Origin: Gracilinanus agilis
Lineage: Eukaryota
Length of the DNA stretch: 57,812 nt
Direction: 5' to 3'
NCBI RefSeq assembly: GCF_016433145.1
Contig: NC_058133.1
Coordinates: 26,587,791 to 26,645,602 of the forward strand
Shown piece after piece: positions 25,501 to 28,500 of this stretch. How positions within the stretch are numbered: position 1 is the first letter of the stretch; each line of letters opens with the position of its first letter. The notes below the pieces were generated by a model. It saw only the letters and a list, made by a program, of their open reading frames with translations, was not told the DNA's origin and ran no database searches. The position numbers were made by a program, and so were the translations under genes.

Positions 25501-28500
25501 TCCAGTTCAGGTGAGTCTCTCCCTGAGCTCCCAGGCTACCTTAAGAAGGATTCAGGAAGGGAAAGAGGGGAAGCCCCCCTTCCCTGGCACCTCTAAGGTT
25601 CCTGCAGGAGTGGAGTTCCTGCGTGGGGAGCGGTTTTGCCCCGGGGCATTTCCTCGCTGTAGTAAGGGCTCCTTTCCGATTATAGTTTTCAAATATCTTC
25701 AGCTAGAGAGCTGGAAGGGACCCCAAAGACTCATTCGACAGCGGAGCAGATGGAGCTTCTGGGCGGTCCAGGGCTTTGCCTGGGGTTACCCAGCTCGTCA
25801 GTGGCGGGGTTTGACCCTCCCCTCTTTGGTCTCTTTCTGCCAAACACACTGTTTGTGCTGGTCTTTCTAAGGGCTTTCTGGATTCTCTTCCTTTTTGCCT
25901 CTTGTTGGTCGCTCTTGGCTTCATTCGCTGTGGGGAGATGGAAGCCCCGTTTCAGACCCCCCTGTGCCAGCTGCTTCCCCTCCAGGCTCTGGTTGTCGGG
26001 CTCCGTCGCCGTGGCGCGTGTTTCCATCACGGCGTCCACCCGTGTCCATTTGTCCCGGTCTTACCCTCTTCCATCTTTCCAAACCGACTTCTGCGGCTCA
26101 GCTTTAGGAAATAAGCTTCGGTGATGACGTCTTTGGGGAGAAATCCTGCCCCGGCAGCGAGGAGGGCTCCGGGGGGCTGTGTGCCGCCCTCCTCCTCGGC
26201 TTCTCCTTCGTCCTTTCTGACGCAGGTGGTGGCTCTGGCCCCGGAGGAGGCGATTCCGCCGGGCCGGAACGACGAGCGGACATTCTACGTGAAGCAGTCC
26301 TGGGACAGTAAGCGCTTCCGCCCCCTGGCCGCAGAGCTGCTGGCCGAGATGAAGAAGCCGCGAGAGACGAGCCCTCCGCGCCACGCCTCTCCCGGGGTGG
26401 CGGGGGCCAGGCGTGCCAGCACCGCCGAGCGGGGGGTCGGGCGGATAGAGTCCCGCCATTCCATCTCCAAGTCCTGTCCCTCGCGGGAACTTCGAGCCGG
26501 CCGGACTCCCCGTTCTTCCACCCCTCCCCGGGCCAGGAAGCGGCTGGACCTCGGCAGTAAGTGTGAAGGGCGGCTATCGGCAAGCAAGATCGGGGCGTCT
26601 CCCATCTCTGCCTGCTTGCTGACGGCTGTCTCTTGGCCTGCAGGCCCCCAGAGGACACCCTGCCGGGCTCCCTGCACCAGGCCCGCCCAGCCTAAGCTTC
26701 CAAATAGTCCCTGCAGCTTTCCGGGACCCACTAAGCGGAAAATGGCCTTCCCTGAGGCCGCTTCGCCTTCTAAGAAGTCTCGGGCCCTTCCTGCGGCTCC
26801 GATAGAGGAAACAAGGATCAGTCCTCTGCGGGCACGGGTGGAGGCGAGCCCTTCCCTGCTCTTGAAGCCAAAAAGGTGAGTGAGGCCCGGAGACGCTGGG
26901 CAGCACGCGGGCAGTCAGCGGGCCTCCACGGGGCACGGCGGCCTTTGGAGCTAGCGAGGCGCCTCTTACTCCTCCCAAAGCTTACCTTCTCTCTAGAAGG
27001 TGTTTCAGGGAAACCTCGAGGCTCCAACAAAGGTTCCCTGGCTTATCTCTCATCAGTGTGGAGGAAGCCTGCCTGGGACCATTGGGGAGAGTGAGCCGCC
27101 ACTCATTGGGCATCTTTTTAGGTAAAGAGGACCCTAAACCTTATCATCACTTCCCGTACAGAGCCCAGGGATCCAGGCTCTTCAGAGCAGTAGCCCACCT
27201 GGGCGACAATGCCCAGCACGGCCCTCAGCTGGACATTTCGTTACAGCTTCTATCTCGGTTTCCTCCTAAAGTGGGTGAGGATCGGGGCACACCAGCTGAT
27301 GCCTCCGATCCCTTCCAGCCCTGAATGAACATGGTGGCTTAGGTGTAATGTGTCATCCCTGCTTTGTGATGAGGAAATGGAGATTCCAAGATTTGCGTCA
27401 GACACTTGTCTATCAAGTTTCTCTGCCTGGTTGAAAACTTGGGTGTACAGGCTGCAGATCCGGTGTGTCTTCTGCTGCCCAATGCTGGCCACGGAAGGCC
27501 TGGGGCGCCGGTCCTCTCTGCCTTTGCTCCACACAGTGGAAGGGGGCTGGGGTCCTTGTTAGAAGGGCAGGAGGCATAGCAGCTGCTTAGGACAGCTTGC
27601 CTCTTGCCCAGGGCTTGCTGACCTTTGGTCATCTGCACTCCCTCAATCCCCAGTGTAGCTTTCAGTGATATCTCTGAACTTTCTAGCAGGGGAGCCAGAA
27701 ACACTGAGGCAGAGGAGGACCAGACCAATAGCCCACCAAGGCATAGGAAACAGTTTCTCAAGTCCTGGAGAAAGACCAAAGACTATTTAAGGTAAGGATT
27801 CACCTTTATGGGGAAATGTTGCTTCCCTTCCCTACTGCCATGCCCACTCCCGTCTGTCTAGAAAACCCTAAGTGGAAGATCAGAGGTTGGAGGGAGAGCA
27901 GACTAGTTCATCTGGTATTCAATGAACCTGGCGCTTAGAGTCTCCTTTTGGCTCTGAATGCCGACTCCCTGAAGTCATGCCCTGCTCCCCTCCCTAGGAC
28001 ATTAGGGAACCACAAATGTGGCTCAGAAGATGGAGATGAATATTTAGTGGAAGAAGAAAGCTCTAACTCTGACTACAGCACTGATGAGGAGGAGACTTCC
28101 ACACCCCACAAACTCCAGAGAAGACAGAACACCATGGTTGGTGCCCGGCACTCAACCCGAAAGACTTCTGTTGAGACCACCCCTTCCAAGACACCTTGTA
28201 AGACTCCCTCCAAGACCCCTTCCAAGACACATTCCAAGACTCCCTCCAAGACCCCTTCCAAGACACCTTGTAAGACTCCCTCCAAGACACGTTCCAAGAC
28301 TCCCTCCAAGACCCCTTCCAAGACGCGTTGTAAGACTCCCTCCAAGGCCCATTGCAAGACTCCCTCCAAGACACGTTCCAAGACTCCCTCCAAGACCCCT
28401 TCCAAGACTCCCTCCAAGACACATTGCAAGACCCCTTCCAAGACACGTTCCAAGACTCCTTCAAAAACAGTAAGGTTCTTCTAGGTACCTTTTCTGGTGG

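Follow-up and report, generated by a model that had tools for sequence, protein, structure and literature searches.

The gene for ORC1, a subunit within the origin recognition complex (ORC), lies on the plus strand of a 57,812-nucleotide (nt) stretch of the genome of Gracilinanus agilis (NCBI RefSeq assembly GCF_016433145.1, contig NC_058133.1, positions 26,587,791 to 26,645,602 of the forward strand), referred to here as the window. One coding exon of this gene ends in a tandem array of 24 four-residue units, most of them Thr-Pro-Ser-Lys (TPSK), and most of the units carry an optimal consensus site for cyclin-dependent kinases (CDKs). We consider it reasonably probable that the array is a TPxK/R cluster common to vertebrates, present as 4 to 10 units in other marsupials, which has here been expanded to 24 units and supplies additional CDK-tunable tethering to nucleic acid or chromatin.

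Several lines of homology identify the gene. Ten exons were mapped, in order and on the plus strand, by tblastn of vertebrate ORC1 proteins, and the exon at 31304-31474, which encodes the Walker A motif G-V-P-G-T-G-K-T, matches human ORC1 residues 530-583 (E = 3e-25). Pfam matches in the exons comprise AAA, AAA_lid_10, and Cdc6_C (4e-13); BAH was matched in two exons, each only a fragment of the domain and each below the Pfam cutoff. A model in which GT-AG splice sites were chosen to preserve the frame gives a complete open reading of 910 residues (Table 1), 76-81% identical to annotated marsupial ORC1 proteins. The first-pass annotation of this sequence had named the gene ORC1, and by homology of exon sequence, exon order, domains, and the complete model, that is the gene that carries the array.

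Table 1. ORC1 features around the array, with positions counted from the first letter of the window
Feature	Position	Strand	Description
ORC1 coding span	22408..34299	+	16 coding exons, all GT-AG, 910 residues; BAH, disordered region, AAA+, lid, winged helix
Preceding ORC1 coding exon	27687..27791	+	105 nt; joints in relatives' RNA 26873/5 to 27685/7 and 27791 to 27998
ORC1 coding exon 7 (exon 8 counting a 5' non-coding exon)	27998..28469	+	472 nt, residues 358-515
TPSK-type tandem array	28179..28466	+	24 x 12 base pairs in frame, ORC1 model residues 419-514
Internal GTAAGA donor look-alikes	28198..28203, also 28270, 28330	+	within TPCK/TRCK units
5' splice site GTAAGG	28470..28475	+	after codon ACA next to last unit
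Next ORC1 coding exon (exon 9)	30214..30296	+	conserved RTPQIR basic stretch and start of AAA+ (...L-E-E-A-Q-L)

The array exon holds an acidic patch of Ser, Asp, and Glu, followed by a basic stretch, and carries the array at its 3' end. It is bordered by an AG acceptor and by a donor, ACA/GTAAGG, three bases past the last unit. On a three-frame reading, only the frame from 27999 is open through the entire exon; the frame from 28000, though free of stops within the array, meets them farther upstream in the exon. By inspection, the array is 288 base pairs (bp) long and consists of 24 head-to-tail units of 12 bp without insertions or deletions. Tandem Repeats Finder detects it with repeat periods of 24, 36, and 60 bp (scores 234-338). 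Frame and borders thus agree with the earlier description of a coding repeat that abuts the splice donor of a 472-nt exon 8. The human exon, put at about 196 nt in that description, was checked only indirectly: the matching human segment is about 66 residues, which is compatible.

Translation yields 15 TPSK and 2 TPCK units (17 TPxK) together with seven variants: THSK, TRSK (three times), TRCK, AHCK, and THCK. The residues are 24 Lys, 23 Thr, 19 Ser, 17 Pro, 5 Cys, 4 Arg, 3 His, and 1 Ala, with no Asp or Glu, for a net charge of +28; Lys occupies its position in 24 of 24 units and Thr in 23, and no unit holds an acidic residue. The full CDK consensus [S/T]-P-x-[K/R] occurs 17 times in the array and 25 times in the ORC1 linker as a whole. 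The unit number, TPxK count, residue counts, and charge of about +28 given by the first-pass annotation proved exact on recount.

At the DNA level, the units fall into three subtypes: A, ACC CCT TCC AAG; B, ACA CNT TSY AAG, variable for Pro/Arg/His and for Ser/Cys; and C, ACT CCC TCC AAG. Every change of Pro to Arg or His and of Ser to Cys in the array sits in subtype B. The subtypes are ordered as ABC and BC higher-order blocks, the structure expected from unequal exchange. With in-frame tandem units of 12 bp and a copy number that varies between taxa, the array is a coding minisatellite. Within the 57,812-nt window, its 20-mers are confined to the array, and we rejected membership in a dispersed repeat family on this ground. 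We likewise rejected a gene on the opposite strand, as it is the repeat itself that gives rise to the minus-strand open reading frames over the array.

The assembly of minisatellites is prone to error, and the real array could be much shorter (or longer) than 24 units. A short-read DNA run from the same organism matches the window over 25800-28208 with one difference and then breaks inside the array, beyond which only two short internal contigs were among those listed (28235-28280 and 28251-28324). Both match with 0 differences, and the DNA contigs are consistent with the assembly. The array itself is readily resolvable: out of the 258 31-mers in it, 223 are distinct and 191 unique; it is free of Ns and its frame is intact. 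A further argument against an artefact comes from RNA of a related organism, described below, whose distinct repeat-internal contigs, if from a single allele, call for an estimated 11 or so units at the least. We regard a gross error in the unit number as very improbable.

A second concern is whether the array reaches the mature protein, since an upstream donor or exon skipping could remove it. The units themselves give this some substance: TPCK and TRCK units contain TTGTAAGA, a good 5' splice-site look-alike, and three such internal GTAAGA motifs are present (Table 1). These sites are in phase 1, and splicing from any of them would put exon 9 out of frame. For two related organisms (A and B), RNA contigs about 88-92% identical to the window in these exons were aligned over 25800-30700. 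They reproduce the exon joints 26556 to 26644 and 26873/5 to 27685/7. A third joint runs from 27791/2 to the array exon with 20 letters between; these letters are the diverged first 20 bases of the exon, so the true joint is 27791 to 27998. The same contigs extend 38-60 nt into the array and then stop, as k-mer assemblies do in repeats.

At the other end, a joint from the array to exon 9 appears in three RNA runs of the relatives, listed as 28267 to 30218 with 'AC' between. Read as ...AAG ACA/CC AC AG CTC..., it is the same Lys-Thr/Pro junction as 28469 to 30214, with two substitutions in exon 9. The relatives' RNA joints listed include no alternative joint into exon 9, none that skips the array, and none from 28198, 28270, or 28330. 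A low-depth RNA contig crosses from the final unit into intron sequence, as expected of pre-mRNA. In close relatives, therefore, both ends of the array lie within correctly spliced mRNA. The first-pass annotation had looked to RNA reads for confirmation that exon 8 includes the repeat; this held for both array ends in spliced mRNA of the relatives, while full retention is unreadable from short contigs. With array sequence at both ends of the exon, a single joint into exon 9 that starts at the array end, and arrays included in all annotated marsupial ORC1 proteins, we give little credence to the idea that the array is absent from the protein.

The donor next to the array is not used identically everywhere. 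A diprotodont transcript from the Logan collection (SRR22936877, L001:1800-1950; P0162) uses a donor 15 nt downstream of the canonical one, which adds V-R-F-F-Q after the array. Reading through the corresponding 15 nt of the window (28470-28484) would bring in an in-frame stop, the TAG at 28482-28484, which shuts off this alternative in the present gene.

Relatives of the protein were found by searching with an alignment of a full-length ORC1 anchor and the window's exons, and then with the Trichosurus protein. All six of the other marsupial ORC1 proteins recovered in this way carry an array at the same site, directly before (S/P)-E-L-R-T-P-Q-I-R. The number of units is about 4 in Dromiciops, 5 in the diprotodont Logan transcript (P0162), 6 in Petaurus, 6 in Trichosurus, 7 in Macrotis, and 10 in Vombatus. 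The variant units AHSK, IHSK, and TRSK also occur in these arrays, which makes the variable B subtype old. In a maximum-likelihood tree, the window ORC1 branches next to the six australidelphian sequences as their sister (support 88/91), a placement that fits a didelphid opossum. The protein-search matches contained no didelphid or dasyurid ORC1. Three further searches yielded no close relative: the exon-8 peptide against a set of 5.8 billion proteins, where a length filter excludes full-length ORC1, and the whole array exon against PDB returned low-complexity look-alikes only, and a search of representative proteins with the AAA+ exon returned only sequences that served to anchor other searches.

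For organism A, provided that a single allele is the source of all the distinct repeat-internal RNA contigs, we estimate a minimum of about 11 units. If this estimate holds, close relatives probably share the expansion. Two RNA runs of organism A, X1 and X2, differ by one 12-bp unit at 28188, which may represent an allele or a path in the assembly graph.

The motif reaches well beyond marsupials. In most placental ORC1 proteins the site is occupied by a conserved Q-TPSK-TPKK-TPKP-RTPR-(H)ATPQIR, about 3-4 units, and Varanus, the coelacanth, and several ray-finned fishes have 3-6 TPxK/R units just upstream of ATPxIP...LEEAR. Human ORC1 reads H-T-L-T-K-V-P-K-K-S-L-K-P-R-T-P-R, a degenerate form, and has 0 full [ST]Px[KR] sites in the segment; by this comparison the usual model protein is atypical of placentals at the array site. 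From the alignments, we take the TPxK/R cluster to be ancestral to vertebrates and the true tandem array to be ancestral to marsupials, so that copy number alone is specific to this lineage. The first-pass annotation had called the array lineage-specific, which stands for the number of units and fails for the motif array, given the clusters at the same site in marsupials, placentals, fish, and the coelacanth. Its call for a marsupial unit count, run here as protein searches, sets 4-10 units against 24. Its designation of a candidate novel system gives way, in view of these same-site arrays and clusters, to a large expansion in copy number.

The size of that expansion is plain from comparisons across the protein. 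Between the acidic patch and LEEA, the window sequence has 146 residues and 18 full [ST]Px[KR] sites. Among 72 other ORC1 proteins, this segment has a median of 62 residues and 2 sites and reaches at most 91 residues and 5 sites. The tract, flagged from the outset as enlarged, greatly exceeds its counterpart in every other ORC1 examined. The linker from BAH to AAA+ is 363 residues long, with an isoelectric point (pI) of 10.9, a net charge of +55, 31 S/T-P sites, and 25 full CDK sites. Linkers of other marsupials have a net charge of +27 to +44, 16-20 S/T-P sites, and 8-11 full sites; that of human ORC1 has +30, 12, and 3. Upstream of the array, the linker also contains RARKRLDL, a conserved sequence of the cyclin-docking type, whose human counterpart is RARKRLEL.

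The position of the array can be related to functions mapped in human ORC1. The non-repeat part of the exon matches human ORC1 398-453 in a PDB search, a weak (E = 0.03) and collinear match, and the RTPQIR that follows the array corresponds to human R465-T-P-R...P-Q-I-R at 465-475. By this alignment, the array site corresponds to human residues about 453-468. In the account of Hoshina 2013 given by Mas et al. 2023 (PMC10366126), human ORC1 413-511 binds RNA and G-quadruplex (G4) single-stranded DNA, and the same account reports that mutation of R441/R444 and of R465 abolishes RNA binding. The array site falls inside the equivalent of 413-511, between R441/R444 and R465, and its suggested placement near the RNA/G4-binding segment was thus borne out. 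The position is homologous, the array standing in for human ~453-468; the human stretch is non-repetitive and degenerate, in contrast to the marsupial tandem array, and RNA binding in marsupials is putative.

Published work on Orc1 linkers provides a frame for the possible role of the array. For chromosome binding, the fly Orc1 linker is both required and enough by itself, and its binding to DNA is ATP-independent and salt-sensitive (PMC11077064). Phosphorylation by CDK1/CycA or CDK2/CycE cuts its DNA affinity more than 100-fold, and the fall is linear over time, a behavior termed a 'rheostat' (PMC11077064). Function is set by composition and not by residue order, such that orthologous linkers are interchangeable from sponge to man (PMC11077064). 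Phase separation of initiators is likewise under CDK regulation (PMC6764820). The 24 Lys, 4 Arg, and 17 CDK sites of the array, together with the upstream RARKRLDL, fit the rheostat scheme. The charge switch on origin licensing proposed in the first-pass annotation agrees with this published behavior of the Orc1 disordered region (PMC11077064, PMC6764820). For the array itself, phosphorylation, nucleic-acid binding, and an effect on licensing are predicted by analogy.

The most likely role of the array, argued from these linkers, would be added CDK-tunable tethering to nucleic acid or chromatin. In the sequence of events that we envisage, a short T-P-x-K/R cluster just upstream of the AAA+ module grew to 24 units in a didelphid-like lineage, presumably by slippage or unequal exchange of 24-36-bp blocks. 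The array would be translated within the disordered linker, in the stretch equivalent to the human RNA/G4-binding region. Its 28 positive charges and 17 optimal CDK sites may give ORC extra multivalent electrostatic tethering to DNA, RNA, or chromatin. Phosphorylation of the TP sites by cyclin-CDK would then lower this tethering stepwise and widen the dynamic range of CDK control. The array would act, in effect, as a longer version of the fly Orc1 rheostat.

Several points weigh against this interpretation. Retention of all 24 units in Gracilinanus agilis mRNA would be an extrapolation from relatives. The short-read DNA contigs end inside the array and so give no independent unit count. Seven of the 24 units are without proline. 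The consensus is largely lost in human ORC1, which makes the cluster dispensable in at least one lineage. Lastly, deletions of 60 residues across the disordered region of fly Orc1 barely alter DNA affinity (PMC11077064), so extra units may add little.

Some of these points lead to the main rival explanation, that the array is a near-neutral passenger: an expansion by slippage, tolerated in a hypervariable linker, translated, and drifting in length with no measurable change in ORC behavior. Orc1 linkers diverge beyond recognition and yet interchange, and the 60-residue deletions are minor for DNA binding (PMC11077064). Unit numbers in other marsupials range over 4-10 without obvious pattern, the higher-order DNA blocks are typical of minisatellite dynamics, 7 units have lost their proline, and the local consensus has decayed in human. 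Set against this is the retention of the TPxK/R cluster at the exact site from fish to mammals, along with the strict composition of the units, with Thr in 23 of 24, Lys in 24 of 24, and acidic residues in 0. Moreover, a doubled net charge and a tripled number of optimal CDK sites are unlikely to be biophysically silent. We view the neutral explanation as possible, if on the doubtful side. A stronger form of the tethering interpretation holds that the array is an adaptive, length-variable rheostat of this opossum lineage, with a selected or polymorphic unit number that affects licensing. This we consider distinctly unlikely; if true, such a rheostat, with twice the positive charge and three times the optimal CDK sites of the linker placed in its RNA/G4-binding region, would reset the tightness and timing of ORC tethering to chromatin or nascent RNA.

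The window also holds parts of two neighboring genes. PRPF38A-like exons lie on the minus strand upstream of ORC1, and CC2D1B-like exons lie downstream. The PRPF38A-like gene (7400-20125, minus strand) has an Arg/Ser-rich C-terminal exon at ~7700-8200 and its first coding exon at 19808-20125. It stands head-to-head with ORC1 (ATG at 22408), an arrangement, seen over 19800-22410, that suggests a shared GC-rich promoter region. A perfect 23-bp tandem duplication (2.1 copies, 13325-13372) lies in a PRPF38A-like intron. An 18-bp tandem repeat (5.3 copies, 70% matches, 50658-50752) lies in a Pro/Ala/Thr-rich open frame of the CC2D1B-like gene and may be another small coding repeat.

The array can be compared with several known systems. 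No description of an ORC1 TPSK array was found in the literature searched, which accords with the first-pass statement that it is undescribed for ORC1. The closest system is the disordered region of metazoan Orc1 (Parker et al. 2019, PMC6764820; Adiji et al. 2024, PMC11077064): it is the same protein and the same BAH-AAA+ linker, with a likewise basic pI, many [S/T]P sites, variable length, and published CDK-graded tethering. What sets the present case apart is that a single tandem repeat makes up one quarter of the linker, and that optimal CDK sites are about threefold as many as in sister taxa. AT-hook arrays, found in S. pombe Orc4 and in echinoderm and sponge Orc1 according to the passages of PMC11077064 that cite them, are alike in that a short basic DNA-binding motif has undergone lineage-specific multiplication within the disordered region of an ORC subunit. 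AT-hooks have AT-rich minor-groove specificity and no CDK consensus, and the array lacks their GRP core. Membership in this class was rejected, as the array has no R-G-R-P core and no Gly.

Two other repeat families are alike in form. The S/T-P-K-K repeats in histone H1 tails and in sea-urchin sperm H1/H2B place proline-directed kinase sites in Lys-rich tandem repeats, and their binding to DNA is weakened by phosphorylation. They have two basic residues after the proline, whereas TPSK has one, at +3, so that the minor-groove beta-turn is not assured. They also belong to another protein family. With units of T-P-S/C-K, carrying Ser or Cys at +2, we rejected membership of the histone H1 (SPKK) type and note a resemblance only. 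The KSP repeats of neurofilament-H are a coding minisatellite of proline-directed phosphosites with a copy number that varies between species and alleles; they serve in cytoskeletal side-arm spacing and are not known to bind nucleic acid or to be cell-cycle CDK targets.

The comparison matters for the study of replication control, as the ORC1 disordered linker is now regarded as the main chromatin tether of metazoan ORC and as a CDK target of graded response in which composition, and not sequence, sets function. A TPxK cluster beside the AAA+ module is conserved across vertebrates and largely lost in human ORC1. With its 24 units, the present marsupial gives a natural allele series at one homologous site, in which placentals have ~3 units and Australian and Chilean marsupials 4-10; the series multiplies one motif, Lys plus an optimal CDK site, inside a mapped RNA/G4-binding region. 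Such a series lets the 'rheostat' and 'composition, not order' models be tested with natural sequences. Seen beside the known systems, the array is a striking quantitative variant of a known, hypervariable, CDK-regulated element and not a new system.

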